Source: Neoconidiobolus thromboides FSU 785
Taxonomy: Eukaryota > Fungi > Entomophthoromycota
Length of the DNA stretch: 64,000 nucleotides
Assembly: GCA_025603075.1 (NCBI GenBank)
Contig: MU626343.1
Coordinates: forward strand, 1 to 64,000
Direction: 5' to 3'
Shown: positions 811 through 62,282 of the stretch, one piece after another
How positions within the stretch are numbered: the stretch's first letter is position 1
Layout: the number at the start of each line of letters is the position of its first letter
Made by a program: the position numbers and the translations under genes
The notes under the pieces: generated by a model
Databases searched by the model: none
What the model saw: only the letters and a program-made list of their open reading frames with translations
Told to the model about the DNA's origin: nothing

Positions 811-916
811 ATAGGGGGATGTATTTTTGTACTCAAGATTTTTATTAACAATTTTTCCACTTGAATAGCGCTTAAAAGATGAAAAAAGTAATGAAATCAA
901 AAAAACACCCTCATAT
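811..916 (+). mobile_element. ~98-bp MITE copy
   Basis: Full-length match to family consensus; flanks ATAG/ATAT. Confidence 0.9.
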
Positions 917-1212
917 TTATATTTATATAAAACAACAAAAAAGCTAATTTTTTTAATTATTATTCTAGCTTCAAAACAAATAAACTTAAAAATATAAACC
1001 TGTATAAAAAATAACTTTTATTTAAAAATATAAGATTAATCGAAAAAGTTTGTTTTATTATTAAAAACTATTTTATAATATTTTTAGTCTATAATTTAAG
1101 TGTTTTAAAAAAAAGTTAGTATAACAAAATAAAATACTAAAATTTTTATTTTTTATTTTTATTTTATTTGTACAAAAAAATTTACTAGCTTTAAAATATA
1201 AGACAAATATTT

Positions 1213-1320
1213 ATATGGGTGTGTTTTTTTTTGGCTTCATTACTTTTTCCATCTTTTAAGCGCTATTCAAGTGGAAAAATTGTTAATAAAAATCTTAAAC
1301 ATTAAAATACATCCCCATAT
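1213..1320 (-). mobile_element. ~98-bp MITE copy
   Basis: Full-length; flanks ATAT/ATAT. Confidence 0.92.
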
Positions 1321-1535
1321 ACTATTCTTATTAATTTAAGCCTATTTTAGTTATATAGACTAAAAATTTTCAAACTATAACAGTTAATTAAACAAAAGCT
1401 GCCTTTTGATTTTAATTATTGAAGGCCAACTTCCATAAAAGCTGTTTTAGCTTAATTAACTGGTTATAAGTTAATAGGCTAATAAGTCAAGATTTATATA
1501 ACTAAAATAGACTCAAAGTATAAAAAGTAATATAT
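1317..1535. repeat. Imperfect fold-back element (~85-95 bp arms) between two MITE copies
   Basis: CTATTTTAGTTATATA (1342) is the exact reverse complement of TATATAACTAAAATAG (~1495); AACTATAACAGTTAATTAA pairs with TTAATTAACTGGTTATAAGTT. Confidence 0.7.
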
Positions 1536-1638
1536 GGCAGTGTTTTTTTTGACTTCATTATTTTTTCCATTTTCTAAGCGCCATTTAAGCGGAAAATTTG
1601 TTGGTAAAATTCTTAAACACAAAAATACATCCCCATAT
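1532..1638 (-). mobile_element. ~98-bp MITE copy
   Basis: Full-length; flanks ATAT/ATAT; shares variant GCCATTTAAGCGG with the 26168 copy. Confidence 0.92.
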
Positions 1639-1660
1639 AATAAGTTAAAAATTATAGAAT

Positions 1661-1765
1661 ATATGTGGATGTATTTTTGTGTTTAAGAATTTTACCAGCA
1701 AATTTTCCGCCCAAATAGTGCTTAAAAGATGGAAAAAGTAATGAAGTAAAAAAATACCCCCATAT
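1661..1765 (+). mobile_element. ~98-bp MITE copy
   Basis: Full-length; flanks ATAT/ATAT; inverted relative to the 1532 copy, 22 bp away. Confidence 0.92.
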
Positions 1766-4700
1766 TTATATAAAATACTTAATAACTTTATTAAAAAAAT
1801 AATACTAAAATAGCTTAAAAGAAAGAATTATCATACTAAAAAGTTCTTTTATACTTTGTATTAAAATATCATATACATAAAATATAATAAAGATTATAAA
1901 TTTTTATCACAAGTATTAAATATAAATATCAAAATATCAAAATATCAAAATAACATTATTTATAGTTAAAAAATTTAATAAAAAAATTTTAAATTAATTA
2001 TGCATAAATTTAAAAATATATTGAATTTTGAACTTAGGAAGATAGTTCTGCTGAAAAATCAAAAGTTTTTGCAAAGCCGCTTTTGATTTGAAGTTGAATT
2101 TGCATGAAATAAAATTCACTTTTAAAACTGAACTTTAATTTTGCAAAACTAATTTTGATTTTGAAGTGTTACCTTGAGCTTATAGTTGTAATTGAATAGT
2201 TTGCTGCTTGAATTGCTTTAAAAATTGTACTAGCATTATTGCTCTATTTATTTTGCAACATTATTTAATCTTTTTAAATAGCTATAGTGATGGAAAATGT
2301 GAATCTATGTTAACCATAAACTGTCAAAGAAATAGATATTATAGGTTTTATACTACATTGGTTATCTATTGCTACTTTGATTTTTCATTTAATTTTAATA
2401 TTCATTCTTGTTCAATTTTAAATATTTAAAAATTAATATGTATCATAAACAAACAATTTTTTTATCAAACTTGGGAGAACCAAAAACTCCAAAGCATCTC
2501 GTTTATTGGTGAATATAAAAAGATAAATAAAATGAGCTATTATAAGTGGAGATGGAATCAACCAAAGGCAAAACCAGTCAAACCAATCAGGAGATGGTTT
2601 ATTTTAAAGCTCCTACTTTTTATTAAGATACTTTCATTTAACAACCATATGCCCTACTTTATGTAAATTTATCTAGACATAAATAAGAAATGATGGTAGC
2701 AATTGGAGTGGACATTTATCGAAAGATTATTTTGTATAAAAAAGTAAACAATTCAGAGGCTGGCAATTACAAAAAAAGGTTGCGGGAGTGGGAGGACACC
2801 TAGGATTTTTGTTTTAGAACATTTGACTTATAATCCTTGTTCATCTAACTAACTCATCTATGTGTTTTATCACTCAAGTAGCATCCTTTAGTTTTATATA
2901 GCATTACGTATTTCTTGTTAGTATTTGGAAGGCCAAATCATGAAATATTATGGGAATAACTATATTAACAATTTTTTCTGCTCACATGCTTGTATACTTA
3001 GATTAAGGTACTCAGCATGCCCGTGTATCATATAAGTATGTTTAGTTGAATCAATTTTTAAAAAATAGGACTAAAAATTTAAATCAACAATATATAAATA
3101 CAAAATGTCAAATACTGACTTTTCTATTCTTTGTTTTATAAAGATAGTCCGTATTCATGAATTTATAAAAAAAGAAAAAAGTTCTCTAGCTCATTTGCAT
3201 GGAGAACATTATCAGCTCTAAACTATACAGTAAAAAACTGCATTTATATAATAATCTATAATCAATCATTTACTCATTTAGGTATTAACTTTAATCAAAA
3301 AAGTTTGCATTTGTAGAGAATAATAAATACAATCTAAGTTTCAAGTAATTTAATACTAACTGTTTATCTATTTCTTTATTTATAGTGGTAAGGCAGAATG
3401 GAGTGGTTTACAGCCTACAATATTTGATAGCGAATCTATAGCTTACAAGCTATTGAAGATAGCAGATTACCTTGAAATTTTTTTTAGGAAATTCATTGTT
3501 TCTAAGCGGTTAAAATTTAATTATTTTGTTACTAAATGACGAATTCGTCCTTAACCCTTTGATTTATTCCCTAATGATGGAGGCTTAGGAAACGTTAAAA
3601 GATGACGATAAAACGAACTTTCGTGGCGCTTTTGGTGTGGACTTTATAGGATATTACTAAACATTTACTAATGATAAAAGAGAAGTTCGATCTTTAATAG
3701 GAATTTTACTTTCTCTGTTCTGTGTCGTGAAGCATTAGCTAAGTATGTTTTAAATAAAGGATAACCTAAATTGTGGAGATTATGATTTATTTGGGTATCC
3801 TAAATTTGTTCAACTGATTTTAATTTCTACCTTTAATACTATTGTTATAAATCATAGAGACTCTGCTTTAAAGGATTGATTCAACTTAATTGATAATCTT
3901 TATGGTAGCTTCGCTACTTCCTCTAAACTTTAGCCTCATAAAATTGAATCCAGATTATCGCAAGACATAGAGATATTATTGTAATTAACAGTCAAGTATT
4001 TATAATATTCTTATACAAGATGTAGTCGGTTTTATTGTGAAACTAAAATATATATTACTTCTCAGTATTTTATAAATAAGCACCCTGATCATATTAATTT
4101 AGCACTAGGAATTTATTTACTATAAAAATTATAAAGCATATTTTTATTATCTTGATTTTATGGTTGCAGTTAACTTATCATATCATTTTAGTTATTCTTT
4201 AATAAAATAATGACTTTTTTCCTCTGTTTGTTCTCTTATACCATTATTTAAGTTTTTCAAATAAGCAGTACTAAATAAAATAGACATCATGATTTTTTCT
4301 AATTAATTATCTATATTTTCGGCTCCTTGATTTATTATCTAACTTTATTATTTAGCTTCGTTATTTAATTTTTGAATCTTTTTCGAGACAATGCAGTTAT
4401 AGGCTTCACATATTGCTTGCTAAAAGAACTTGAAACAATTGAAGGTCCCGAAATGTTTTTATCAATATAGGAAAAACAAAAGAAATCAAGAAAAGACTAG
4501 TTGGGAACTGATCTAAGTAGGATAAATGTGGTTAAAGAACCAAATGACTAGAAGGGGGTTCTGGCTGCAGTTTATTCGCTTTACATTAAGAGAATTATAT
4601 GAAGCATATTTGGATTTCAACTCATATAATCCAAATATGAGAGGATGAAGCAACAATAGAATGAGGTAAATGAACTATTTCAGAAGAATTTGGAGTATGA

Positions 4701-5697
4701 AAAGCTTTTAAATTTCTTTCTGGTGTTTTGTATTTTTAAGATTCAACAACTTGAATAAATATTATAATTTTAATCTATTACAGCAATTAAGTTATTAACT
4801 TTCATATAGAAAAAACAGCCGCCGTGATATCATGCACCCTATATTCAAAGTAATTATTATTTAACAATGTATTTAACTTTAAAGTCAGCAGAGATTAGAA
4901 ATGATATATAAATTAAGGGCTTGGTACAACGAGGCTTTATGATTATATAGCTATATTATCAACTAGAATAACTATAGTAGTATATCAATGCACCTATTGA
5001 GTTACATTAAGCTTTTTGAGAGCTGTAGTTAAAGTTTTAATTTGCTTATGTAAAAGCAAGGTCGAATTGAATAGTACATATTTTATTTATTTTATTGAAT
5101 AAACAGATATGATTTTATAGTTTTATAAATAAAAGGATAATAGCTCCTTTAATCTGTTTAATTGTAAAAGTGCATTAGCTTCTAATTATGATGTGGATAA
5201 CTAGAAGGAGCTTAAATATCTTTATTTGTTATAACATATAATTCTGATACAATACTCTTCTGTTTGCTAAAACTATGAGTAAACTCTTAATATTTTTTAT
5301 TCAATTTTAAATTTATTTTTAAAACATTTAAATGAATTGAAGTCCTGTTATCAAAACATGGTGATGGAACTACCCTTTATGACTTGCTAAAGACTGTTGA
5401 GTATCTTAGCCACTCAGGCCAAAACATTTATCCAGAGACGCTTGACAAATATGTACATCAGATGTACATCAGATTTGCCAAGTTGTTAATATACCATTAA
5501 GCTTTGCTTCATAGCATTTTTCTAATTCTCTACACAGTATAAAGTATTTATTTACGTTGTTAATTTATGCTTATTGGCTTAAATTTACCAAATATGAAGG
5601 TTGCTTTTAACTATAAAAATACTATCCTATAACAAACGAAACAGTCATTAGAAAACAGCTACAACTTTAATATAATAGCAATTATTTATTGACAAGG

Positions 5698-8180: not shown

Positions 8181-8195
8181 AAAATGATTGGTTAA
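8181..8195 (-). promoter_or_regulatory. CCAAT box upstream of eIF2A
   Basis: AAAATGATTGGTTAA about 50 bp before the ATG; identical 15-mer at 48678-48692. Confidence 0.55.
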
Positions 8196-19350: not shown

Positions 19351-19453
19351 ATATAAGGATATTTTTTGATTTCATCACTTTTTCCATTTTTTAAGTGCTG
19401 TTTGAGTGGAAAAATTGTTAGTAAAATTCAAACAAAAAAATACATCCCCATAC
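19351..19453 (-). mobile_element. ~98-bp MITE copy, degenerate
   Basis: Consensus core TTTTCCATTTTTTAAGTGCTGTTTGAGTGGAAAAATTG...ACATCCCC; flanks ATAT/ATAC. Confidence 0.85.
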
Positions 19454-19854: not shown

Positions 19855-21631
<1,777 letters not shown>

Positions 21632-26068: not shown

Positions 26069-26171
26069 ATATGTGAATATATTTTTGTTTAAGAATTTTA
26101 CTAACAGTCTTTCCACTCAAATAGCGCTTAAAAAATGGAAAAAGTAATGAAACCAAAAAACATCACAATAT
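26069..26171 (+). mobile_element. ~98-bp MITE copy
   Basis: Full-length with eroded ends; flanks ATAT/ATAT; right ATAT is shared with the next copy. Confidence 0.88.
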
Positions 26172-26274
26172 GAGAGTGTTTTTTTTAACTTTATTATTTT
26201 TTCCGTTTTCTAAGCGCCATTTAAGCGGAAATTTTGTTGGTAAAATTCTTAAACACAAAAATACATCCCCATAT
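26168..26274 (-). mobile_element. ~98-bp MITE copy
   Basis: Full-length; flanks ATAT/ATAT. Confidence 0.92.
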
Positions 26275-28959: not shown

Positions 28960-29427
28960 TGTGAAATATGGTACTCAGTGTTTGGAGTCAAGAACAGCTA
29001 TTGCTGGGTTGACTACACTATAAGTCGAAAGGTCTTAGTTTATATGACTAAGATAGACTTGGTTTATGAGGAATAGCACGTAATAGGTTACAAGCTATAT
29101 AAGACAAATAGAATAAACAATACTAATGTAAAATCTAGGTAAAATATTATTAAGAAAACTTAGTGGCTTTGTTAAATGTTCGAGATATCAGGGAATAATT
29201 CAGTTGAAAAGCCTCGAACTACTATACCCTGTAAACTCTTTTATACTCTGAAAAGTATAAATATCAAAATGAGAAGATAATAAATATCCTTTGTGATGGA
29301 GCTAGAAATTCTCATAGCAAATCAAACTAAGAACATGGGATTGATTTTCTCTGAACTCAAGAACACAACAGCTTAGGCGATTGTTATGCTATAATTAACC
29401 ATAGGACTGACAAAGCGATATTTCACA
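28960..29427 (+). mobile_element. Solo LTR, 468 bp
   Basis: TGTGAAAT...ATTTCACA inverted termini, TATATAA followed by AATAAA; flanks CTAA/CTGA (3 of 4 match). Confidence 0.88.
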
Positions 29428-29967: not shown

Positions 29968-30122
29968 TAATGGGGATGCATTTTTAAGTTTAGCAATTTT
30001 ATTAGCAATTTTTCCACTTAAATAGCGCTTAAAAGATATTAAATCTTAATAAAAAAAATAACAATGAACATTTATCAGATAATATACATGGGAATGATTT
30101 TTTTGGTTTCATTACTTTTTCT
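29968..30122. mobile_element. MITE copy split by a micro-inversion
   Basis: 5' 70 bp in + orientation (29968-30037); the missing 3' ~36 bp are present inverted at 30086-30122. Confidence 0.75.
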
Positions 30123-30299: not shown

Positions 30300-30405
30300 A
30301 TATAGAGGTGTTTTTTTTAAATTTATCACTATTTCCATTTTTTAAGCACTATTTAAGTGGAAAATTGATAATAAAATTTTTAAACAAAAAAATATATCCT
30401 CATAT
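30300..30405 (-). mobile_element. ~98-bp MITE copy
   Basis: Full-length, degenerate; flanks ATAT/ATAT. Confidence 0.85.
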
Positions 30406-30544: not shown

Positions 30545-31008
30545 TGTGAAATATCGCTTTGTCAGTCCCATGGTTAATTATAGCATAACAATTTCCTAAG
30601 TTGTTGTGTTCTCGAGCTCAGAGGAAATCAATCCCACGTTCTTATTTTGATTTGTTATGAGAATTTCTAGTTCCATCCCAAAGAATATTATCTTCTCATT
30701 TTGATATTTATACTTTTCAGAGTATAAAAGAGTTTACAGAGTATAATAGTTCGAGGCTTTTCAACTGAATTATTCCCTGATATCTCGAACATTTAACAAA
30801 GCCACTAAGTTTTCTTAATAATATTCTACCTAGATTTTACATTAGTATTGTTTATTCTATTTGTCTTATATAGCTTGTAACCTATTACGTGCTATTCCTC
30901 ATAAACCAAGTCTATCTTAGTCATATAAACTAAGACCTTTCGACTTATAGTGTAGTCAACCCAGCAATAGCTGTTCTTGACTCCAAACCCTGAGTACCAG
31001 ATTTCACA
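30545..31008 (-). mobile_element. Solo LTR, 464 bp, with 4-bp target duplication
   Basis: Reverse complement of the 28960 copy; flanks AAGC/AAGC. Confidence 0.9.
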
Positions 31009-31188: not shown

Positions 31189-31295
31189 ATATGGGGATGT
31201 CTTTTTTTGCTTCATTACTTTTTCCATCTTTTAAGCGCTGTTTACATGGAAAAATTGTTAGTAAAATTCCTAAATACAAAAATACATCCCCATAT
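31189..31295 (-). mobile_element. ~98-bp MITE copy
   Basis: Full-length; ends GGGGATGT...ACATCCCC; flanks ATAT/ATAT. Confidence 0.92.
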
Positions 31296-31338
31296 ATTGT
31301 ATGTCTATTAAACATTTAATAAAAATAAAATAATAAAA

Positions 31339-31573
31339 ATAAGTCTTTTAAGTTGAACTTTTCTAATTTCAAGCTTTCAAATCAATCATATGGGGATGCT
31401 TTTTTTAGTTTAATTACTTTTTCCATCTTTTAAGCACTATTTGAGTGGAAAGACTGTTGGTAGAAATTTTAAACACAAAAATATACTCCCATATATTAAA
31501 GACTTACAAATTTAAAAACTTAAAATTTGGTTAATTCAAGTAAATTCTAAAACCAATTTCAACATCCCCATAC
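31339..31573. repeat. Second ~120-bp repeat family, here interrupted by a MITE
   Basis: 31339-31387 and 31495-31573 align to the reverse complement of 51206-51324; ends in CATCCCC like the MITE. Confidence 0.7.
31388..31494 (-). mobile_element. ~98-bp MITE copy (nested in second repeat)
   Basis: Full-length; flanks ATAT/ATAT. Confidence 0.92.
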
Positions 31574-34146: not shown

Positions 34147-34252
34147 ATGTGGGGATGTCTCTTTTTGTTTAGGAAATTTACTAACATCTTTTCCACTCAA
34201 TAGTACTTGAAAAGATGGAAAGATAATGAGCCCAAAAAAAAACACCTCATAA
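34147..34252 (+). mobile_element. ~98-bp MITE copy, degenerate
   Basis: Full-length; flanks ATGT/ATAA. Confidence 0.82.
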
Positions 34253-34977: not shown

Positions 34978-35267
34978 GTTGATTTAAAACATGTGGGCAA
35001 TGTTTGTCCATGGTACTTAAGTGCCTAGAAAACATTACCGATCTCTAGCCTTTCTACTATAGCGTTAAAAAATAAATTATAGAATCGTTTTATAAGAAAT
35101 TCAAAAAAATTGTACATTTGTTCGTTGTTATCATGACTGTTCAAAGACTTCATAATTTTTTCTACCTTGTGACAAGCTGATTTTTGATCTACTACAATTA
35201 AGTTTATCATAAAATTAAAATTTTAATTAATAGTTTAAAAGTTTATTGATGTTTTGAGACTGCTGTC

Positions 35268-36185
35268 ATGTCAATATTCAACTTTTTATTTTTAGTGATA
35301 TTTAACTTGTATTTAATCACCAGCTTAAAGTCTTATGATCTAAGAAATGACTTAGCTAGCTTAGAGAACCGATATGGCCTAAATTTACCACCAGGAAGTC
35401 GGATAGTGTATGGAGAGATAGCAGAAGAACCTGATCAATATCATTTTATTATGGCAATTGCCATTGGACTGCTTCCAGACAGCGTAATCTGTGGAGGTAC
35501 TTTGATTAATCCATATACCATAGTAACCGCAGCACATTGTAACAAAACATTTGGGTTTCAGGGTTTAATTGCTTTTCAATCAATCTATGACTTTGATGAT
35601 CCAGAACAGGTTAGAAGAGGGAGCAGATATAATATTATCAATTTTATTCAACATCCAAATTATGACCCAGAGCTGGGTGTTAATGATAGTAAATGCTAAG
35701 TTATCTTATTTTGGTAATTTTTTATTAACCTCTTTTCTTAAGTTGCAGTACTACGACTGAATAGACCTGCCAGGGTTAAGGCTCCAGTCATGTTTGATGA
35801 TGGTACCATAGCAAACGATTTTTTACATAAAGTAAGGGTTGTTGGATGGGGTTTCTATGAAGTTGGAAGGAGAGTATCTAGTAGGGTGTTGAGGAGAGCA
35901 GATTTACAAATAACTGATAACAGGATGTGCCAACTTTATATGAAAACTCTGTTAGGTGAATTTGTAAGTGAAGACAAACATGTATGTGCTTTAAAAATCG
36001 GTGGTCAAACTGATTCTTGTCAAGGAGATAGTGGCGGTCCTCTTTTAGCTCGAGTTTGTGGAGAGTGGATTGTGGTTGGAATTGTTTCTTTCGGTTATCA
36101 GTGTGGATTAGCTACAGTACCCGGTGTATATACTAAGGTTGGCGCTTTTTTGGATTTTATTAGACAATATACGTTTTATAGATAG
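35268..36185 (+). CDS. Secreted trypsin-like serine protease (S1A), 2 exons
   Basis: Signal peptide, GSR|IVYGE activation site, TAAHC, spliced DIAVLRL, DSCQGDSGGP (Asp in S1 pocket), PGVYTKV. Confidence 0.93.
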
Positions 36186-37097: not shown

Positions 37098-37200
37098 ATT
37101 TGAGAATGTTCTTTGACTTCATCGCTTTTTCCATTTTTAAGCGCTATTTGATGGAAAGAGTATCAGTAAACTTATTAAACGAAAAAATATATTCTCATCT
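37098..37200 (-). mobile_element. ~98-bp MITE copy, degenerate
   Basis: GACTTCATCGCTTTTTCCATTTTTAAGCGCTATTTG core; flanks ATTT/ATCT. Confidence 0.78.
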
Positions 37201-38243
37201 AAAAAATCAAATTATATATTTTTATTAACAAAATCTTCAATGATTTGACATTTGGCTTTGAATTTGAATTACACAAATTGTTATTAATTTTTTTCAACTA
37301 TGACCATAAACAAAAATATATTTTAAATACTACAAGTTTAAAGTTTTTCCAATAACTATATAAAGCAGTGTTTTGTTTAAAAATTAGCTAAATATTTTTT
37401 AAAATTTTAAACTGAAGAATAAGAGTAAGCAAAAATAAAGTATAAAAAGATTCTTATATTATACTTTATACATTGTTGTCTCCTAAAATCAAAATAGATA
37501 TTTGATAATTAAATAAAAAAGTAATAAACTTAATACTCTTAATGTATAAGAAACGTTTTAAACCATTTTTAAGTATTGTGACATATTTGTTTCAATGATA
37601 TTTATTAATTAAGGGTTTAAGCTTTGGTAGTACGGTTATCTTGTTCAGTCAAAAGTTGTGAATTAAAGTACATAAATTTCATATATCAATTATCCATACA
37701 TGATATATGGATATGTAAATTTTATGTGTAAGCAAATGGCTTTAATATTTTTGAAGCTTCCTTGGTGGTAACTGCTTTATAATTAAACATTACGGGATTT
37801 ATAGTGCTTGATATGGCTTAATGTTTTCAGCAAAAGTAGTAGTAATATTGCTTGCTTATAGCATGTTTTTTAGGAGCTTTGGTAGAGCATTAATTTATGA
37901 TTTTTTATTATATAAACATGGTTGAAATTACAACTATGTAAACCGTCTTTAAAGATCACTCATTGCTACTACTTTTATCATATAAAGTCATTGTCATGTA
38001 TTGTGATTAATCGGTATTATTTTTTTAAACAAAATAACTATTTTTTATAATTTTATAGCATTTTTATACTACTTTTTACTTTTTAAAGTGCTACAGTTTT
38101 TTAAATTTTTAAAACTCATTTATTATCCAAAAATAGCAACTTAATTTTTGATCTACTACTATTATGTTTATCACTAAATTAAACAAAAATTTAAAGAGAT
38201 ACAATTAAAATTTTATTTATTTATATTCGAAATATTAACTATC

Positions 38244-39160
38244 ATGTCAATATTCAATCTATTATTCCTAACAATAGTAAATCTACAACTAATCACCAGT
38301 TTAAAGTCTTATGATCTAAGAGCGGATTTAGCCAATTTAGAGAACCGATATGGTCTAAATTTACCATCAGGGAGTAGAATTGTAAACGGAGAGATAGCAG
38401 AAGAGCCAGAGCAATATCATTTTATCATGGCTATATCTACCGATCTATTACCAGGTTTCGTAATCTGTGGCGGTACTTTGATTAATCCATATACCATAGT
38501 AACCGCATCTCATTGTAACAAAACAATTGGATTTCAGGGTTTAATTGCGTATCAATCTGTTTATGACTTTGATGATGAAGAACAATTTAACAAAGGGACA
38601 AAATTTAACATTATTGATTTTATTCAACATCCAAAATATGATCCAGAGTTATATATTAATGATAGTAAGAATTAATTTAAATTGTTTAATAGCTTTTTGT
38701 TAATATTTTTTTCTTAGTTGCTGTGTTAAGACTAGATAAGCCTGCTAAGGTTAAAGCCCCAATTAAGTTTGATGATGGTACTATTGCAAACGATTTTTTG
38801 CATAAAGTAAGAGTAATAGGATGGGGCTTGTATGGAGCTGGGAATACGGAAACCAGTAGAGTGTTAAGAAGGGCCGACTTACAAATAAGTGATAGCAAGT
38901 TATGTCAAATATATATGAAATCTTTATTAGATATTTATATAAGTGAAGAAAAGCACATTTGTGCTTTAAAAATTGGTGGACAAGCTGATTCTTGCCAGGG
39001 AGATAGTGGTGGTCCCCTTATATCACGAGTTTGTGGTGAATGGGTTTTGGTTGGAGTTGTTTCTTTTGGTTATGAGTGTGGGTTAGCTACAGCACCTGGT
39101 ATTTATACTAAAGTTGGCAATTACTTGGATTTTATTAAAGAAAACACTTTTTATAAATAA
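38244..39160 (+). CDS. Secreted trypsin-like serine protease (S1A), tandem paralogue, 2 exons
   Basis: GSR|IVNGE, TASHC, spliced DIAVLRL, DSCQGDSGGP; same intron position as the 35268 gene. Confidence 0.93.
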
Positions 39161-41943: not shown

Positions 41944-42048
41944 CTCTGGGGATATATTTTTTTTGTTAAAGAATTTTGCTAACAATCTTTCCGCTCAAAT
42001 ACCACTTAAAAATGGAAAAAGTAATAAAGACAAAAAAACATCCCTTAC
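41944..42048 (+). mobile_element. ~98-bp MITE copy, degenerate
   Basis: Full-length core GGGGATAT...CATCCC; flanks do not match. Confidence 0.82.
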
Positions 42049-42532
42049 TTTAAAATACATCTGATGTTTCTATTTTTTTTGTTTCTATTCATAAAACAAT
42101 TGAGAATCATCAGCTCTTCTAAGTTTTTGAAAAGCAATGAGTATAATTTATACTCACATTATATTAACTAAAATTTAAAATTAAATAGAAATAAAAACAA
42201 GTTAAAAAGATAACTGCATAACACACAATGAATAAAATAAAAGAGCATAGTGACTGCTTTTTTTAGTAACGTTTATTCTAAAAATTTGAATAATACTAGG
42301 GAGTAGATACAGTAGTAACAGTATGGCGTCTTTATAAGACAATAAAATCTGGGCAACTGCCTGGTTATAATTTCGGATCCAGAAAATAGGATAATAGCCA
42401 TTTTTGATTACTATCATTCATTAGTTAGTACTTTATGCTAAATTAATTTGATCAATATGATTATTTATAGAATAGTAATAAAGCATGTAAAGTTAAAAAG
42501 ATCGTATACAAGAAGTTAGACTTTCAATCATT

Positions 42533-42638
42533 AAATGGTGATGTGTTTTTGTATTTAAGAATTTTACTAATAATTTTCCACTCAAATAGCGCTTAAAGGA
42601 TGGAAAAAGTGATGAAGCCAAAAGAAACACTCCCAAAT
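42533..42638 (+). mobile_element. ~98-bp MITE copy
   Basis: Full-length; direct flank duplication AAAT/AAAT. Confidence 0.92.
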
Positions 42639-42780
42639 GTTGTGATATATATAGTTTATCTAATATTTTGATTCATCCATGAAGCAAAATATAAAAAAGC
42701 AGCAAATCCATTATAAAGGTTTTCAATTGATTTAAGCCAATTTTTTAACGGAGGAGTCTTGATGATTTATAACAGTAGTA

Positions 42781-43494
42781 TCAAAAACAGAAATCAAACC
42801 TGTTTGAGTAGTTAAGGTATCCAAAAAGTATGTAATCTGTATAAGTTGCCTTTTCATCTTCCAAAAACTTGTGTTTAGCTAATCTTTCGCAAAATGTTGA
42901 GAACATTTTTCCAATCATATGCCGTGTGGCTTCTTTATCATGAGTAAGCACCTTTAAATATATTCCAAACCTTATTTCTTGCTCTTCAGCTTCTGAATCT
43001 TTATAAAATTTTAACATTGTTAAGTAAAATAAGGGTCCAAAGATATATTTATACTCTAATAATGTATTAGCAAAGCTTTGAAGTTCTAGAGATACATTGT
43101 TTCCTGAATATTTTCCTTCAAGGTACCTAGCAACTATTGACGGTTCGGAAGTTATAGCCTCAACATCAAGACTTATAAGATACAGGTTATTCTAAAATAC
43201 TTTTATAATAAATGAGATAAAATTAGTAAGAAATAGTTACCTTAAATCTGAGAATTCCTCGTTATCCCCAATATACATAAACTTATCCATAATAATCTTG
43301 ACATTATCTTCAAGAAATGTAAGCTTTTTCGCATTAAGGCCAACTTTCTTAATAAATAAATTAAAACAATATTTGATTAAAGCATAATCTTTTACCTTAT
43401 GCTTTAAAGCTAACAAAGTTCTCCATACTAATGGATTAGATAAAGTGCCTGCCCTCTTTTCTATCAACTCGTGAATTTCTATCATCTTTATCAA
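42781..43494 (-). pseudogene. Fragmented ORFs of unknown product (possibly a helical-repeat gene relic)
   Basis: Two protein-like ORFs (85 and 78 aa) with splice-like signals, but no stop-free spliced model could be built by hand. Confidence 0.3.
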
Positions 43495-44466
43495 AATTAA
43501 AAGACAAAAAAAGCATCTTTGTTTATCTCATCAAAATAAAACTTATTTATTTTATGGATTAACCTCAACTTTTCATTTCAAATTAAGTTTTGGAACTGAT
43601 TAAATAAAAAAATGGAAGTAAAATCGAAGTTATAGGAAACAGTGGATTTCAAGTAATAAAAATGATCAAAAGTATAAAAACGTTAAACAATACTGAACAA
43701 AAGCCCATAAAAAAACAATATTCTGGCTACTATTAAAATCATAATAAAGATACTCGATTTCTATCACTTAGTTGATAAAGAGGGAGGAGGGCCATATAGT
43801 CCTTATTGGTGGTAGATTCTAATATATTTAAAACAATTATTTACATTCCACTAACTTTTGTTTACTATTAGCCTAAAGTTTAGCTTTTTATTATATAGCC
43901 TTGATTTTTAAATCAATAATTTTACCCTCAAAAATGTTGTAAGGCACATTTTGAAACTAAGAGAGTATTATAATATACAAACGACAGTAAACTACCTTCA
44001 AGTATTGCTTTATCTATCAATCAAACTTGGAGTAAAACCCCCTTGATCGTCATTGGCATGAATTACATATATAAATATAAAACCATAGCAACTAGATTGA
44101 GTTTACATACTATACCAACCTTTTATCCCCCCCACGGTCATTTGCTCTTTAGTCAGCTTGAATACTAATTAAATCCTACCATGTTTTTCCTTGAACCAAT
44201 ATTAATTCATGTGATTAATAAAGCCTAAGAGAAAGGCAGGAGTTACTTTATATGTACGAAGAAACTTATTCTAGTATTTTAATCAAACAGTTTTTTGGAG
44301 AGAAGTAAGAGTTCATTAAATCGAATGGAGGCCTTTTATTACCTTTAAATGAACTGATTGATGAGAAGAAGTATTCAGGTGGCGAGATAGATAGATAGAT
44401 ACATTCTTCTCTAACTTATCGATTTATCGGTTTTTAGTTTTAGTTATATAGTTGGCTGCAATGACT

Positions 44467-44572
44467 ATATGGAGATGTTTTTTTAGTTTCATTACTTTTC
44501 CCATCTTTTAAGCGCTATTTGAGTGGAAAGATTGTTAGTAAAATCCTTAAACACAAAAATACATCCCCATAT
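44467..44572 (-). mobile_element. ~98-bp MITE copy
   Basis: Full-length; flanks ATAT/ATAT. Confidence 0.93.
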
Positions 44573-44829
44573 GCTGTTTGACCATTGAAAACGATTTAAT
44601 TAATGACAGCCCAAGTCCTGATTGACACATTAAAGGTCATTGATAATTTAAAACATTGATTTGTTACAATTCAACAGCTTTATTAGGAGTGTGCGGGTTC
44701 TTTTGACCCTTAACTAAGCTTATTTATGAATAAATAAATAAATTGAAAGAAACATTTGTTAACTTGAATAAAATATTGTAAAGCTTTATAAATCAAATCG
44801 AACTAAAACATACTAAAACATAATATAGT

Positions 44830-45207
44830 TTAATAACCAATTCCTCTTAAGTAATTGGAAAGCTATGAGGCAACTCTTGAAGCTTCATCATATTGAGTAG
44901 AATCACCATGAATACCAATAATGATATCCTTAGTAGTTTTTGAAATGGCAACACCGCCATGTCCAAGTTTATCATCAACTTATCATCAACCTTGATACAC
45001 ATCTTCCTTTCCCCATTTATAATAATTACATTGGCATAAAAGATACTTGGATCATTAAATCCTTCTATTATAGTTTGTAATCCCTCTGGCGCGATACTAA
45101 AGTCTTCAAAAGATGCCCATACACTACCATTCTCTTTTCTAAAGATAACAGCTTGTTTAGGCTTACCAACAGTTAACACAACTTGACCAATGTACCCTTA
45201 TCAAGGC
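44830..45207 (-). pseudogene. Profilin pseudogene A
   Basis: **GYIGQV/LTVGKPKQAVIFRKENGSVWASFEDFSIAPEGLQTIIEGFNDP...INGERKMCIKVDDK, frameshift at an 11-bp duplication, then LGHGGVAISKTTKDIIIGIHG...VAS*LSNYLRGIGY*. Confidence 0.8.
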
Positions 45208-46125
45208 TTTTTTTTAAATTTTAATTCAAATAGGAAAGATATTTTAAAAAGTTGTAATTAGTTTGCTATTATGTGAAAGCTTGCTTAAATTATGCATTGC
45301 TACTTCATAAAGTTTATCAAGGATATCCTTGTTCTATACTTATTGATTTTTTGAATATATTTACACCAGAGGTGTAAGTAATGGGTTTTGTTCGATAAGT
45401 TTCAATTTAATGCTGCTAGGACAGGCAGTAATATCAAGTTTCTGATATTTAAATTAAAATTTATTATTACTTTTATAAATAAATACCAAATTTGCAATAT
45501 TTCCATTGGTATACTACAATAACAACTAGCTTGTCTTATATTCTATATCAATTTTTATATCTAGTTCAGTCTTTTGTTACATAACCAAATGAGATTTATC
45601 CTGTTTATTAACCCATTAAAAGCTCTATTTTTAGTGATAACCTATTTTGTACTTGAACCTTACCAACAATTTACAAGAGTACTTACCACACTGCTTATTA
45701 CTTCTCCAATATACTATATAATAAATCCATAACAAATGGAGGTGAATGAATGCCCAAGTAAAAATTCTATCACTATTTATAATAAATATTTATTATAAAG
45801 TAAAATAAACATCAACTGAAGATTTATCTGTGAAGTATAAAAATAGCTCAAATAGTTTTAAAATGACATATAGTTTAAAGGGGATCAAACCGAATCGTTA
45901 TATCGAATATTATCTGGAGCTTTTAATGTCCACTTTAATATTAAATTTAATGTTAAGCCAGTGCTGAGTTCAAATTTTTTATAATCTACAAATATGTTGT
46001 TGATTTTCTTATAGTATTATGGTAGATTCTACAAAATGAACATATTAACTCTTATTTGGCTTTATCTAGTGACCCTTTTTATTTGCAAATTTTATGTATA
46101 AATCAGTCATCCAATGTAACTTCCT

Positions 46126-46228
46126 ATATGGCAGTGTTTTTTTGGTCTTATCACTTTTTCTATTTTTTAAGTCCTGTTTGAGTGAAAAGACTATTGGTAA
46201 AATACAAACAAAAAATACATCCATATAT
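46126..46228 (-). mobile_element. ~98-bp MITE copy, degenerate
   Basis: Full-length; flanks ATAT/ATAT. Confidence 0.82.
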
Positions 46229-46697
46229 GTTGAATTTATTTAATATCATTAGGTCATTAAGTTATTTAAATGAGAGGAAATTATAAAAATGAAAACTATA
46301 ATTTTTTTATTTGAACATTTGTCTACATCGATTTACTAATCAATATAAAAGAAGATCATTTTGTTAATACAACAATTGGCTATATTAACTATTGATTAGT
46401 GTGTAATGAAAAGTAATTAACTATGAGGATTATGTTATATACGAAAGAGCCTCAGCGGTTATTATTTCAATTCTAGAGTATTTAAAAGGAACTGATCCTT
46501 GGATTCTTTTATTTTATTCATATTTTAGTTTATTTTGACTTATAAACTTTTGTTACCTTTATTTAATTAACCATAATAGTAGAAATTTAATCAAATCAAA
46601 AGCATGAATTTTTGATTCCTTTGTTCCTATTCTATATGGTTTAGTTAGGGTTTATACGGCTTATATTTCTGATAGAGCTGCTTGATTTTATTTTATC

Positions 46698-46803
46698 ATT
46701 TGAGGGTGTATTTTTTTCATTTAAGAATTTTACTAGTAATTTTTCCATTCAAATAGCATTTAAAAATGGAAAAGGTGATGAACCCCAAAAAATATCCCTA
46801 TTT
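46698..46803 (+). mobile_element. ~98-bp MITE copy
   Basis: Full-length; direct flank duplication ATTT/ATTT. Confidence 0.87.
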
Positions 46804-47072
46804 GATTCTCAAATTCACCAAAAATGTATTGAAGCACTCGAATATCAAGTAAGTTATATCAATAATTACATTTTAAACTATGTAAGCAAAAAGGTTGTTA
46901 ACATTAAATAGTAAAAAAACATGAGATTACATATATTATGAGTATTTATGTTTATTGTTTATGGGATCAGAACAAAAAAACAGCTGATATTAAATATAAG
47001 TCAATAAGCAAATAAACAATATAAATATTATTTATTACCATAGCAGTAATTTATGTTTCTTTGATTATAATT

Positions 47073-47178
47073 ATATGGGGATGTATTTTTGTGTTTAGAA
47101 AGTTTACTAACAAATTTCCCGCCTAAATAACGCTTAAAAAATGGAAAAAATAATGAAGTCAAAAAAACACTCCCATAT
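47073..47178 (+). mobile_element. ~98-bp MITE copy (close to consensus)
   Basis: 106 bp including ATAT/ATAT flanks. Confidence 0.93.
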
Positions 47179-47243
47179 AATGTCAAGCAAGTTAGTGAAA
47201 AGTAAGTATATAAAATCAAGATCAGGATTATAATAAATGCATT

Positions 47244-47347
47244 TTATGGATATGTATTTCTATATTTAAGAATTTTACTAACAATCTTTACGCCCAAATA
47301 GCGCTTAAAAGATAGAAAAAGTAATGAAATCAAAAACATCCCCATAT
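47244..47347 (+). mobile_element. ~98-bp MITE copy
   Basis: Full-length; flanks TTAT/ATAT. Confidence 0.9.
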
Positions 47348-47394
47348 CTTAGCAAAGTTGAATTGATAATTAGTTATTAAGTACAATCCTAATT

Positions 47395-47840
47395 AAACAA
47401 GGTACCATTCTTAATAATAATTCTAGTAGTATATAAACTAACTTTCAAAGGCTCTAATAGTCCATCAGAAGGAGTGTAAGTTACCATTGAAGGGTTGAAG
47501 GATTAAAAGATCTATTACTCTCTTCTCCTACCAGAGTTACTTTAAATAGGTATATAAGGATGCATTTTTATGTTTAACAATTTTATTAACAATTTTTCTG
47601 CTCAAGTAGTGCTTAAAGGATGGAAAAAGTGATGAAGTCAAAAAACACTCTCCTATATACCTTCATGCTAATCAAAAAGATATTGCTGGTAAACCTGAAC
47701 ATAGTGATATTGTCATTTCAAAAACTTCTCAGAGTAATAGCATTGGGGTTTATTATTAACTTAATCAGGATAGTGAAGCTTTAGTTGCTGTTTTGGGACT
47801 TTCTGATTACTTGAAAGGAAATAGTAAACAAACTAATTAG
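47395..47840 (+). pseudogene. Profilin pseudogene B, interrupted by a MITE
   Basis: KQGTILNNNSSSI*, FKGSNSPSEGV*VTIEGLKD*KIYY, VTLN[MITE]YLHANQKDIAGKPEHSDIVISKTSQSNSIGVYY*LNQDSEALVAVLGLSDYLKGN; aligns with pseudogene A and the profilin C-terminal LxDYL motif. Confidence 0.72.
47552..47658 (+). mobile_element. ~98-bp MITE copy inside profilin pseudogene B
   Basis: Full-length; flanks ATAT/ATAT. Confidence 0.88.
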
Positions 47841-47923
47841 CCTTTACTTATATTTTAGTTTAATTTGACTTAGGAATATTTTCTATTTTTCTTTTCTTCA
47901 ATAAATAGCAATAAAAATTTAAT

Positions 47924-48030
47924 ATATGGGGATGTATTTTTGTATTTAAGAATTTTACTAACAAACTTTCCGCTCAAATAGCACTTAAAAAATGGAAAAA
48001 ATAATGAAGTCAAAAAAAACACTCCCATAT
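47924..48030 (+). mobile_element. ~98-bp MITE copy
   Basis: Full-length; flanks ATAT/ATAT. Confidence 0.93.
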
Positions 48031-48219
48031 GTTGAAAATTTTGGACAAAACATGGTTATAGTTAATCCCTTGAAGCAAATTTCCAAAGGTAGCATTTAAC
48101 TACTTGAGTACCATGAAAGAAATTGTTCATCAAATCTTTAGAATTAGAATTGATAAGCATTGTTTGCATATGATTTAAATCAAAATTATGACAATCATTA
48201 CCCACGTAATTTAATTAAA

Positions 48220-50800: not shown

Positions 50801-51205
50801 TAGCAGAACATATAATATAAGCGGTAGGAGCTAAGATTCAGACATATAGCTACAGTAACGTATATGATTATTTAAGTAACCTGATTATAATAAATGTTAT
50901 AATATCGGTTTATAACTATTTTGATTATCTTTGAATAAAAAGGTAAAATAATTTCAAGAGATTTCTCTATTGTAGTATTAGTTCAAATTTAATAAATTGT
51001 ATAAATAGTTTAATAATTTAGATTTTAAATTCTGACACAAAATAGTGTTTTATTAGGATTTTAAAAAAACTATAATTGATGTATTGTTAAAAAAATCAAA
51101 TAAATTTGATGTAAAAATAATCAAAAACTAAACTGAAAAGAAAGAACTTTAATTTTGTCTTAATTTTCAAAATAGTGAAAAGTGCTTGCCTAATAAGTAA
51201 TAATT

Positions 51206-51324
51206 GGGGATGCCCTGATTGATCTCAGAATTTAGTTAAATTCAATTTTTAAGTTTTAAATTTGTAAGTCCTTAATACATAATTCAAAAGCTTAAAATTA
51301 GAGAAATTTAATTTAAAGGCTTAT
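51206..51324. repeat. Uninterrupted copy of the second ~120-bp repeat
   Basis: Reverse complement aligns across the MITE insertion at 31388-31494. Confidence 0.7.
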
Positions 51325-51330
51325 ATTTCA

Positions 51331-51429
51331 GTAGCAATATTTTTTTTGATTTCATCACTTTCTCTATTTTTAAGCACTATTTGAGTAAAAAGATTGCTAG
51401 TAGAATTCTTAAAAAATACATCCCCTTTA
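51331..51429 (-). mobile_element. ~98-bp MITE copy, degenerate
   Basis: GATTTCATCACTTTCTCTATTTTTAAGCACTATTTGAGT...ATACATCCCC; one end eroded. Confidence 0.78.
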
Positions 51430-51633: not shown

Positions 51634-51831
51634 ATGTGGGAGTGTTTTTTTTGACTTCATTATTTTTTCCATTTTTTAAGCGCTATTTGAGTGGAAGGAT
51701 TGTTAGTAAAATTCTTAAACAAAAAATACATCCCCGTATTTTTTGTTTAAGAATTTTACTAACAATCCTTCCACTCAAATAACGCTTAAAAGATGGAAAA
51801 AGTAATGAAGCCAAAAAAAATATCCCGATAC
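51634..51831. mobile_element. Head-to-head fused MITE pair forming a 198-bp palindrome
   Basis: Minus copy 51634-51735 directly joined to plus copy 51736-51831, which lacks its GGGGAT end. Confidence 0.9.
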
Positions 51832-57700: not shown

Positions 57701-58012
57701 TAGATAATTGATCTAAGAAATCCATCTATAAAAAAAGATTAATCTTTCATTAAAAGAATACTATTTTTTTCTTGTTTTTACCTGATTCAATACCACATTA
57801 GTATCTGGTATTAAATAATGAGGTTTTGAAATTATTTTTCCCACAATAGATTTGGTACCAGTTAAATTATTTAATTTAATATCTTGAGTTGATGGACATT
57901 GAGTACAACCTTCAATAGAACAATAGATATCATCTCGAAGATAATGCTCAGTAACTACTTTGACTACTTTTCCTTTCCCAGTTTTTTTATTAAATGTTTT
58001 ATTACGAAGCAT
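54701..58012 (-). CDS. DIS3: Exosome catalytic subunit DIS3/RRP44 (PIN, CSD, RNB, S1), multi-exon
   Basis: [63 protein letters not shown]. Confidence 0.97.
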
Positions 58013-58553
58013 ATTCGAAACTTATTTTGTGCAAAAAGGTATCAAAATGAAAATATAACTTTCATAGTTTATTATTTTACAAATTGAAGCTAAAAATTTA
58101 TTGGTTAAAATTACTTAAGTTTTGCTTATTTTAAAATTTTGGTTCATTTCTAAGGAAAATTATTTAAAAAACCTTGAAGCTTTTAAGTATTCAAAAAAAA
58201 CAAAGTTGGAAGGATATTAAAACAATAATAATAAATTATTACTAAAAACTATTGAAACCACTCTAAGTAGTTCTAACAAATAGACTAATATTTTATTTAA
58301 AATTGAGAAGTTTGAGTTTAAATAAAACATTCAAAATTAAATAATATCTATTTAAAATAAAGAAAATATTTGAGTTACTATTTTTATAGTCAAATAAATA
58401 TTATAAATATTGTAATACAACTAACTTACAAATTATTTAATATTATTTTCTTTAATTTCAATACTTTTATTCATTTTATAATTGTTATAAAATATAAGAA
58501 TATTCTTAATAAACTTTATAAAAATATTTTTAATTAAATTTCATTCTCCTTCT

Positions 58554-59817: not shown

Positions 59818-59951
59818 ACTTAATATTGGACTTTTTTAAGGTTTAAAGAGTGCAAAAGTAAAATTATTGGAAAATGAAATTTTTTGATTTTGTAATTAGT
59901 CAAAAATAAACATTAAATTTAAAGCTCAAGGAATTGAAATCGATTTTTTTT

Positions 59952-60058
59952 ATATGGGGATGTATTTTTACGTTTAAGAATTTTATTAACAAATTTTCCA
60001 TTCAAATAGTGCTTAAAAGATGAAAAAAGTGATGAGGCTAAAAAAAATACACCTATAT
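59952..60058 (+). mobile_element. ~98-bp MITE copy
   Basis: Full-length; flanks ATAT/ATAT. Confidence 0.9.
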
Positions 60059-60691
60059 ATTGTTTGTTGATAAGTAATGTTGACAATAAAAATGAAAGTA
60101 AATCATGTGTAGTTAATTAGAATATTTTATGTGGATAAATTTAAAGATCAAAACTCAAATTCAACATTAGTAGTTCGGTTTTCCTTTTTTGCTCATTTTT
60201 GTGCGACATAAACTCCAAAAACGATTATTAGCCAAAGATATAAATAAAAAACACTCTTAATTGATTTAGTTGAGAATTAATCGAAAATACTAGCTTTTTT
60301 TTAGTATTCTACATTTACTTTACAGTTTCTATTAATACCAATATTTTAGTTAAAACTGAGCTGTATTCTTCAATTAAAAGGCTTCGATTTTTTAACTAAA
60401 TACTTGATTATCCCTATTTTTATTGATTCATTAAGTGATATAATAAATAACTACTTATCAATGTAGTAATCATCCAGTTTGATAAATCATGAAAATAAAC
60501 CATAGATTCAACTTGCACAAATTAGTGCACAAAAGCTATATTATTTAAAATAATACACTATATACATTAAACAAAAGACATTAAATTTAAATTTAATAGA
60601 TACATATTTAGAGTATCGTCTTTTTTATATAAAATACATAACTAAATAAATTGGGAGTTCCGAGGACTGTTTTTTACAGACCATGTTTAAC

Positions 60692-60800
60692 ATCTGGGGA
60701 TGTTTTTTTTTTTCGATTTATTACTTTTCTATTTTTTAAGCGTTATTTGAATGGAAAAATTGTTAGTAAAATTCTCAAACATAAAAATACATCCCCATCT
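60692..60800 (-). mobile_element. ~98-bp MITE copy
   Basis: Full-length; direct flank duplication ATCT/ATCT. Confidence 0.92.
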
Positions 60801-61642
60801 CTTTTGCTCAAAAAATCATTAAACCACTCCAAATATCATATTATAATCATTTATAAAATGAAATGAAATGAAAATATCTCTATTAATAAGAATAAACAAA
60901 TTAATAAGCAATAAATATTAATATAAATGTTCCTTGTTAATGAAGCAACAGTCCATGTTAAATACAGTCATTAATATAGGGTACAAGGTATGTCAAAGAC
61001 TATTAAGTTATATAGGATGAAAATTGATGGCATAATATAAGTTATCACTTTTTATAGAATGAATTGTAAATTTTACGCTAACTTTAAAATAATAAGTTTA
61101 AAATAATAAGACTAATAAGAATTCATTAAAAGTATAATATATGACTATATATGCTTACTTTAATCTATTTATACTAATTTAGATAAAAAATAAAAAATTA
61201 TAATATGACATAAATTTGAGATTTCTAATATTGTTAAATAGGTAAAAAGAACCTAAAAATCATTATGATAATATTGTATACCAAATAAAATAAAATTAAT
61301 TTATTATAAACTTTATATTAATATTGATTATATTCTAAAGGGTTGGCATTGATAGCTACCTAGTTGTTTTGAGGAACTAATTGAGAAACTAATATACTTT
61401 ATGAAAGTAATTACCTTTATTTAAATCTTAAAATCAATTACAATTAAGAGAACGGAGAACTACCAATCGTGATTCTTGATAGTATATTAAGGACTGTTGA
61501 ATAAATTAAATAATTAAAAGTCTGTCGATTTGTTTTTGTCAGAATATGGGATATACTAGTTGTGAAATTGTTCCTGTAATAAACCATTTCAATTTTTTAA
61601 ACACAATTTTCCTATTTGAATAATAATAATAATAATAAAACA

Positions 61643-61989
61643 ATGTTTTTACAAGACTATGTTGATGATAAATTAGTAGGTTCAAGTCGCCTTGTAGGCG
61701 CTACTATTATTAATAGTCAAAATGATGACGTTTTGGGAATTTCTAAAGGTTTATATCTTGAACCAGAAAAAAAATTGATCATTATTAAAGGGCTTGATAA
61801 CCTAAATACTTTTTTCCTGGTGATATTATAATTAATAAAAAGAAGTATATGTATGATAAGACAGATGGTGCTATTATTTATAAAACAAATCAGATTATTA
61901 TTGATATTTATAATGGAAAATCTCAACTTGGTGATGCTGTATCCACTATTTCTTAACTTTTGGATTACTTAATGGAAAATAGATATTAA
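61643..61989 (+). pseudogene. Profilin pseudogene C
   Basis: MFLQDYVDDKLVGSSRLVGATII...IIKGLDNLNTF, -1 frameshift in a T run, then FPGDIIINKKKYMYDKTDGAIIYKTNQIIIDIYNGKSQLGDAVSTIS*LLDYLMENRY*. Confidence 0.8.
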
Positions 61990-62175
61990 CTAATCTTATC
62001 TTTAGCTATCTTTGGTTATCCCTTTTTTATTTTTAATAATAAAAGTTTGATGCAACTTAATGATCCTCTTGATTGATTGATTTTAACTAACTATAACTTA
62101 GTTAAAATACAAGAAAATTTGCATGCTCTAATAAAGTTGTTCAATAATATCAAATTAACTTATTAAAATTTTAAT

Positions 62176-62282
62176 ATTTGGGGGTATTTTTTTTAGTTTT
62201 ATCACTTTCTCTGTCTTTTAAGCACTGTTTGAATAGAAATATTGTTAGTAAAATTCTTAAACACAAAAATACATTCCCATGT
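62176..62282 (-). mobile_element. ~98-bp MITE copy
   Basis: Full-length; flanks ATTT/ATGT. Confidence 0.87.

Follow-up and report, generated by a model that had tools for sequence, protein, structure and literature searches.

Introduction

Sola elements encode a DDD transposase and generate 4-bp duplications (PMC10741241). The tetranucleotide AWWT has been reported for Sola1 (PMC3845634), and Sola2 elements of Dictyostelium and Polysphondylium likewise carry AWWT duplications (ATAT, AAAT, ATTT), together with GAG...CTC ends (PMC3627910, supplements 2 and 11). Because AWWT occurs in both Sola1 and Sola2, the tetranucleotide alone does not choose the subgroup; the transposase does. A 2017 survey of fungal cut-and-paste transposons recorded Sola2 only once, in Aspergillus flavus, and not at all in Zoopagomycota (PMC5751038). 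Here, a 98-bp miniature inverted-repeat transposable element (MITE) is described from the early-diverging fungus Neoconidiobolus thromboides FSU 785 (GCA_025603075.1, record MU626343.1), within a 64-kb stretch that is referred to throughout as the window. The data support the classification of this element as a high-copy Sola-type MITE, and more precisely as Sola2. An earlier sequence-only reading of the same DNA had also proposed a Sola-type MITE, and this part is borne out by a transposase relic and by a coding relative; AWWT, however, is not peculiar to Sola1, and the transposase points to Sola2. The suggestion that the family is possibly undescribed likewise agrees with the present search, in which no relevant description of the element was found in the literature on N. 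thromboides, MITEs and Sola.

Results

Copies and internal structure of the element

A BLASTN search with the 98-bp consensus returned 30 matches between positions 815 and 62278 of the window, at 79-94% identity, with 15 on the plus and 15 on the minus strand; this corresponds to about one copy per 2 kb and agrees with the approximately 29 copies in both orientations that had been counted by the sequence-only reading. A 31-nt probe for the 5' end, allowing up to 3 mismatches, found 11 sites in the window versus 0 in 100 shuffles. Full-length copies with both flanks make up 26 of the 30, are 92-101 bp long and contain no open reading frame (ORF), while the other four comprise two truncated copies (29972-30037 and 30090-30121) and a pair fused head-to-head (51638-51735 and 51736-51826). 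Identity of the copies to their own consensus ranges from 74 to 95% (mean 85%; best pair 94%), and because the copies are only this similar to the consensus, the family appears to be old and to have amplified over a long time. The element is thus short, non-coding, bounded by terminal inverted repeats and present in many copies (30 in 64 kb), as is expected of a MITE. The copies are listed below with their flanking tetranucleotides.

815..912, plus strand: MITE copy; ATAG/ATAT
1217..1316, minus strand: MITE copy; ATAT/ATAT
1536..1634, minus strand: MITE copy, head-to-head with 1665..1761 (gap 30 bp); ATAT/ATAT
1665..1761, plus strand: MITE copy; ATAT/ATAT
19355..19449, minus strand: MITE copy, mismatch at outer position; GTAT/ATAT
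26073..26167, plus strand: MITE copy, 3' ATAT common to copy 26172..26270; ATAT/ATAT
26172..26270, minus strand: MITE copy, tail-to-tail with 26073..26167; ATAT/ATAT
29972..30037, plus strand: truncated MITE copy, consensus positions 1-66
30090..30121, minus strand: 3'-terminal MITE fragment, consensus positions 68-98; flank ATGT
30304..30401, minus strand: MITE copy, GAG 5' end; ATAT/ATAT
31193..31291, minus strand: MITE copy; ATAT/ATAT
31392..31490, minus strand: MITE copy, filled member of a paralogous filled/empty pair; ATAT/ATAT
34151..34248, plus strand: old MITE copy; ATGT/ATAA
34759..34851, plus strand: MITE copy, mismatch at both outer positions; TTAT/ATAC
37102..37196, minus strand: MITE copy, GAG...CTC ends; AGAT/AAAT
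41948..42044, plus strand: MITE copy, no recognizable duplication; CTCT/TTAC
42537..42634, plus strand: MITE copy, exact non-palindromic duplication; AAAT/AAAT (42533/42635)
44471..44568, minus strand: MITE copy; ATAT/ATAT
46130..46224, minus strand: oldest MITE copy, 74% identity to consensus; ATAT/ATAT
46702..46799, plus strand: MITE copy, GAG 5' end, 3' end CCCT, one base short of the inverted repeat; exact ATTT/ATTT (46698/46800)
47077..47174, plus strand: MITE copy; ATAT/ATAT
47248..47343, plus strand: MITE copy, mismatch at outer position; TTAT/ATAT
47556..47654, plus strand: MITE copy; ATAT/ATAT
47928..48026, plus strand: MITE copy, 93% identity to consensus; ATAT/ATAT
51334..51425, minus strand: degenerate MITE copy; TAAA/TACT
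51638..51735, minus strand: youngest MITE copy, 95% identity to consensus, fused head-to-head to 51736..51826; outer flank ACAT
51736..51826, plus strand: MITE copy without its first 6 bases, fused to 51638..51735; outer flank ATAC
59956..60054, plus strand: MITE copy; ATAT/ATAT
60696..60796, minus strand: MITE copy, exact non-palindromic duplication; ATCT on the plus strand at 60692 and 60797 (= AGAT)
62180..62278, minus strand: MITE copy; ACAT/AAAT

When the copies are aligned with 25 nt of flank, similarity begins abruptly at G-G-G-G and stops at C-C-C. The element starts GGGGATGTATTT (terminus GGGGATGTATTTTT), and 12 of its first 14 bases recur in inverted form among the last 14. The two ends thus form a T-rich terminal inverted repeat of about 14 bp, in agreement with the imperfect repeat that the sequence-only reading had described. 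The 5' end reads GGG or GAG in 20 of the 26 full copies, and CCC or CTC lies inside the last four 3' bases in 19 of them. Termini of the Sola2 type, 5'-GRG...CYC-3', are therefore shared by the MITE, the published Dictyostelium element DFa-2 (GAG...CTC) and a coding element discussed below (GGG...CCC). Both the Sola superfamily and this feature of its termini were reportedly defined by Bao et al. in 2009. The inner stem formed by TTTTTCCA and TGGAAAAA, likewise noted earlier, is present in the consensus, and 85% of its cells are paired across copies. Two-sided changes were seen in 5 cells versus 2.0 in shuffles, a weak excess that is reached by 13 of 500 shuffles and could be inherited. Folding of the element was no better than that of shuffled sequence (z = -0.16), and Rfam gave no match anywhere in the window. 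The inner stem reads as a sub-terminal inverted repeat of the transposon and not as an RNA structure.

Flanking duplications and an empty site

In a curated flank table, ATAT stands on both sides of 14 of the 26 full copies, and three further copies carry exact non-palindromic duplications (AAAT at 42533/42635, ATTT at 46698/46800 and ATCT at 60692/60797), all as given by the sequence-only reading. An excess of direct 4-bp duplication, which that reading had made the test of its proposal, was found among the window copies: exact 4-mer duplications occur in 17 of 26 copies versus 9.4 expected when left and right flanks are paired by permutation, and none of 100,000 permutations reaches 17 (P < 1e-5). 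Exact matches other than ATAT number 3 versus 0.23 expected (P = 5e-4). Among the copy flanks, no duplication reaches 5, 6 or 8 bp, and the rate of exact 3-mer duplication is 0. Because nothing is duplicated past 4 bp and 3-mers never match, footprints of the hAT, Mutator and PIF types are excluded; PIF/Harbinger elements (Tourist MITEs), with their 3-bp TWA duplication, were considered as a candidate and rejected by the 3-mer result. The flank consensus over the 26 copies is A (21-24), T (21), A (23-24), T (23-24), an AT-rich tetranucleotide of the AWWT form.

Insertion is further indicated by a paralogous pair of sites. One repeat is split by the copy at 31392-31490, while its paralog, on the opposite strand, is uninterrupted:

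51205..51328, minus strand: empty site with a single ATGT, in the uninterrupted paralog of the sequence carrying copy 31392-31490

The element and k further bases were excised and the remainder was realigned to the paralog. The best score was obtained at k = 4, with the gap-free junction ATC-ATAT-ATTAAAG against ATT-ATGT-ATTAAGG. The empty site contains one tetranucleotide and the filled site two, and both ATATs therefore cannot belong to the element. Duplication and empty site together mark the copy as an insertion, the sole empty site found being paralogous.

The interrupted repeat is itself of some interest. It is about 125-230 bp long, has two copies (31335-31566 and 51205-51328) and ends in ...CATCCCC followed by ATAC or AATT; its last 8 bases are the same as the 3' end of the MITE. 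The repeat may represent a further non-autonomous relative or form the 3' end of a longer element.

A Sola2-type transposase relic in the same contig

At the start of the contig lies the remnant of a transposase gene:

3..401, plus strand: C-terminal relic of a Sola2-type DDD transposase that retains the third catalytic block (HGKSIVDGHFG), truncated on one side by the start of the contig and on the other by an LTR-like (long terminal repeat-like) insertion at 403-657

The frame reads ...FFAEHHGKSIVDGHFG... and is broken at 403 by the 255-bp LTR-like element. An exhaustive HMMER search with the relic returned 52 relatives at E <= 1e-3 among 1.8 billion representatives, including hypothetical proteins of Conidiobolus coronatus (KXN64648.1) and of Smittium species and many metagenomic proteins of 320-640 aa, and a profile search added relatives in Smittium angustum, S. 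megazygosporum and Dentiscutata erythropus. Alignment of this family (profile A1) revealed a CxxC motif and three acidic blocks, DFKEN, WSD and HGKS-VDGHFG. As a Sola2 reference, the Sola2_DFa-2 transposase of Dictyostelium fasciculatum was used, which has the same three blocks (PMC3627910, supplement 3). The A1 profile aligns to the core of this reference that holds the first two blocks (first and second D) with an hhalign probability of 99.1% (E 1.4e-18, 38% identity), and the third-D block of the relic matches it at E 5e-6. The relic at 3-401 thus represents a Sola2-clade DDD transposase in the genome that carries the MITE, as judged against the Sola2 reference only. The three Sola groups have diverged so far that identities of 38-42% should not lead to confusion between them. 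Pfam holds no family for the relic or its relatives, and Atlas look-alikes of the relic offered only vague transposase/integrase leads. The copy of the transposase in the window is dead.

Among the relatives, P0043, P0045, P0007, P0067 and P0092 are hypothetical proteins of C. coronatus, three Smittium species and Dentiscutata erythropus. The insertion that breaks the relic belongs to a 468-bp repeat with ends TGTGAAAT...ATTTCACA, found at 28960-29427 and 30545-31008 in inverted orientation and at 95% identity; the sequence at 403-657 is a third copy with an internal deletion. One copy is flanked on both sides by AAGC, and the repeat looks like solo LTRs of a retrotransposon. The region 2400-5600 offers 3 kb free of ORFs of at least 90 aa, with short open segments only, and no similarity to transposase was seen in it.

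Termini of coding Sola2-type relatives

The link between termini and enzyme was examined at the level of the family. A scan of metagenome contigs with A1 yielded 48 loci, in which inverted repeats that bracket the coding region and have identical 4-bp flanks were sought. The clean case is locus L009, a 2.8-kb element with a single frame of 573 codons, a perfect 18-bp inverted repeat starting GGGTAATTATTTTTG, ends GGG...CCC and ATAT on both sides. The encoded protein shares 42% identity with the core of Sola2_DFa-2 (E 2e-23) and 34% with the relic in the window (E 3e-12). The first 15 bases of the MITE match both termini of L009 at 12 of 15 positions, and a score of 11 is reached nowhere else among the 5,780 positions of L009. 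In the other loci the background rate is 8 per 303,820 positions, and 4 of these 8 matches are themselves G-G-G termini following ATAT, AAAT or ATTT in transposase-bearing loci. In L019, which is more distantly related, the perfect repeat is 14 bp long and ATTT stands on both sides. The published DFa-2 element starts GAGCATTTATTT and ends in CTC followed by AAAT (PMC3627910). Because the termini of L009, those of the background loci and the ends of DFa-2 agree, the MITE can be said to carry the terminal signature of the Sola2-type transposase clade.

Two further arrangements were observed among these loci. At L009, positions 1-44 and 2863-2904 hold the 3' and 5' ends of a related element across the ATATs, in the order tail-ATAT-element-ATAT-head, which could mean either that the element inserted where two tandem copies meet or that the assembly was routed through a repeat. 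In the C. coronatus contig KQ965313.1 (L003), positions 2040-2075 read ...GAAAAAAAGTTACCC followed by ATAT, some 620 bp downstream of the transposase stop. This site resembles the 3' end of the MITE (A-run, CCC, ATAT) and may be the terminus of that element, as a guess only, since the contig does not include the 5' end.

Gene context and clustering of copies

Gene calls were read for 15.7-20.5 kb and 25.3-55.2 kb, which cover 23 of the 30 copies. All 23 are intergenic, in line with the earlier statement that no copy lies inside an intact exon or intron, and six of the copies lie in the 3.6 kb that separate a profilin gene from a divergently oriented Zn-cluster gene. ORFs of at least 90 aa cover 40% of the window. 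No credible ORF is overlapped by a copy; the sole frame of this length that is overlapped is a putative one of 99 aa on the minus strand (721-1017), opposite copy 815..912. Several copies are stacked: tail-to-tail at 26073-26270 with one common ATAT, head-to-head at 1536-1761, and fused head-to-head at 51638-51826 with the loss of 6 bases. Such stacking would be expected of a target that each insertion regenerates, the duplicated ATAT serving as a new site. A trypsin-like protease gene in the same region is tandemly duplicated (35180-36184 and 38144-39159; 77% identity over about 1 kb), the second copy being annotated as partial.

Discussion

The present data allow a model in which, with a probability that we put at roughly 0.85, the copies constitute a Sola2-mobilized MITE family with GRG...CYC ends, AWWT targets and a 4-bp duplication. 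This model proposes that copies would be mobilized in trans by a Sola2-type DDD cut-and-paste transposase, which would bind the T-rich terminal inverted repeats, of about 14 bp, of an element ending 5'-G[G/A]G...C[C/T]C-3' and excise it. Reinsertion would follow a staggered cut at A-W-W-T sites, in the great majority ATAT, and repair of this cut would duplicate 4 bp. Because each duplicated ATAT can serve as a target in turn and the DNA between genes is rich in A and T, copies would be expected to pile up there and beside each other. The transposase lineage represented by the relic is probably the one that moved these MITEs.

Several observations weigh against this model. The relic includes neither of the two element ends, and tblastn found no further piece of transposase in the window. 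Protein searches returned no transposase gene call from N. thromboides: the relic as query gave 0 and the family profile 69 matches, none of them shown to come from this genome. No autonomous element with MITE termini was seen in this genome. A second candidate for a full coding element, locus L005, was set aside, as its nested repeats run past the putative ends and leave no clean boundary. Inside the window, only the inner two flank positions covary. Isolates were compared through Logan contigs of four DNA runs over 42500-48100, a region with 8 copies, for which the runs contain 74-92% of the sampled words. Older copies (46130, 46702) are bridged by contigs, and younger copies are entered from their unique flanks, with the contigs breaking inside. 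The presence/absence polymorphism that the sequence-only reading had proposed to look for did not appear: all 8 copies are present in the four runs wherever a contig reaches, and the contig joints proved to be cross-matches between copies. There is no sign of recent movement in this region among the four runs. Divergence from the window is about 0.6% of sites in two of the runs; with isolates so closely related, the lack of polymorphism does not count against mobility.

The length of the duplication can be read in another way, in which only 2 bp (WW, usually TA) are duplicated, the element runs TGGGG...CCCCA within A-WW-T, and the outer A and T reflect target preference together with bases of the terminal repeat. 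The three informative duplications (AAAT, ATTT and AGAT) depart from ATAT at the inner two positions only, and what they prove is the duplication of at least 2 bp. Mismatched flank pairs differ at 9 outer versus 5 inner positions, a small difference in raw counts, and copies 19355, 34759 and 47248 (GTAT/ATAT, TTAT/ATAC and TTAT/ATAT) mismatch at outer positions just as a 2-bp duplication predicts without mutation. However, the 14-19% divergence of these three copies accounts for their mismatches equally well, and the excess of 9 over 5 is itself expected at a copy divergence of about 15%. Published Sola2 duplications are all AWWT too, and filled and empty sites are the same under both models; thus a 4-bp duplication (AWWT, G..C ends) and a 2-bp duplication (WW, TG..CA ends) are inseparable by sequence. 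As the informative duplications vary only at inner positions, the 4-bp length rests on the superfamily assignment. The sequence-only reading had called the 4-bp duplication provable; what stands is that duplication exceeds that of permuted pairings and stops at 4 bp, whereas its proven extent is at least 2 bp. The transposase family is reported with 4-bp duplications (PMC3627910, PMC10741241), while no superfamily has been described with variable 2-bp WW duplications and ends of this kind. We infer that the stagger is 4 bp rather than 2 bp, and regard the shorter duplication as improbable.

As to the enzyme, it is conceivable, if quite improbable, that a Sola1-type or other Sola transposase mobilized the copies and that the Sola2 relic is an unrelated resident, since AWWT has been called a Sola1 hallmark and G-initial, T-rich terminal repeats have been described in MITEs derived from Sola1 (PMC3845634). 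However, the sole transposase relic found in the window is Sola2-like, the termini of the Sola2-like coding element L009 match those of the MITE at 12 of 15 positions between ATAT flanks, and the Dictyostelium Sola2 terminus GAGCATTTATTT resembles that of the MITE. A Stowaway-like Tc1/mariner MITE with a TA duplication would account for the central TA of most flanks, the short terminal repeat and the hairpin-like form; it is scarcely credible, being already contradicted by the matched central AA, TT and GA of three copies, as Tc1/mariner elements always use TA (PMC10741241), and Pfam scans found no Tc1/mariner transposase in the window. Likewise, a dispersed structured RNA gene or a regulatory repeat kept by selection might be suggested by the 85% pairing of the inner stem and its slight excess of two-sided changes over shuffles. 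In addition to the failure of the fold to exceed shuffles and the lack of an Rfam match, such an origin is contradicted by the occurrence of both orientations, the target duplications, the paralogous empty site and the decay to 74-95% identity, and next to no weight can be given to it. The Sola2-mobilized MITE family thus remains the preferred reading.

How far the family extends can be gauged from the short-read data, in which thousands of Logan contig pieces with at least 95% identity pile onto the copies. The genome as a whole may thus hold copies in the thousands, as an order of magnitude only, and any genome-wide copy number would be an extrapolation of this kind. A tentative and rather doubtful extension is that Sola2, instead of being a sporadic guest acquired horizontally by fungi, is a long-standing resident of their early-diverging lineages, that N. 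thromboides holds some ten thousand copies making up 4-5% of a small genome, and that some of these are still mobile even though no intact transposase gene is called; the relatives in Conidiobolus, Smittium and the glomeromycete Dentiscutata have been raised in favor of long residence. If true, the burst would rank with the largest known for Sola-derived MITEs, its copies crowding promoters and intergenic DNA through an ATAT target that renews itself.

The element is of a known kind and mechanistically ordinary, and no new mechanism is shown. What is new is a well-documented fungal Sola2 family with a MITE derivative, in a superfamily almost absent from fungi in the 2017 survey (PMC5751038), and, since several genomes of zoopagomycetes and glomeromycetes encode proteins related to the Sola2-type transposase, a wider fungal range than that survey recorded. 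In practical terms, the element accounts for roughly 4-5% of the window, explains the breaks in short-read contigs about every 2 kb and presents annotators with a dense source of promoter-proximal variation. A more general point is that, for those Sola elements that invariably insert into AWWT, the sequence by itself does not distinguish a 4-bp duplication from one of 2 bp.

Comparison with known systems

Stowaway-like Tc1/mariner MITEs are similar to the present element in size, in their short terminal repeats, in their AT-rich, TA-centered targets and in their location near genes, but have a strict 2-bp TA duplication, whereas the N. thromboides MITE has matched AAAT, ATTT and AGAT flanks and belongs with a Sola2 transposase family. 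The Sola1_NA MITEs of Bombyx mori and Rhodnius prolixus (PMC3845634) are likewise Sola-derived, with an AWWT/AWDT preference and a G-initial, T-rich terminal repeat; they are, however, 190-700 bp long, occur in tens to hundreds of copies in insects and have Sola1 as their partner, while the relic in N. thromboides matches Sola2. The closest systems are the Sola2 elements DFa-1/2/3 of D. fasciculatum and PPa-1/4/5 of Polysphondylium pallidum (PMC3627910), which share with the MITE the AWWT flanks ATAT, AAAT and ATTT, the G-R-G...C-Y-C ends and a short T-rich terminal repeat (DFa-2 GAGCATTTATTT, MITE GGGGATGTATTT). Each of the three catalytic blocks of Sola2_DFa-2 finds a match in the relic and its family. 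In contrast to these elements, that of N. thromboides has no Fanzor passenger and its resident transposase has decayed; it is a derivative of 98 bp without coding capacity and is very densely distributed in a zoopagomycete host.

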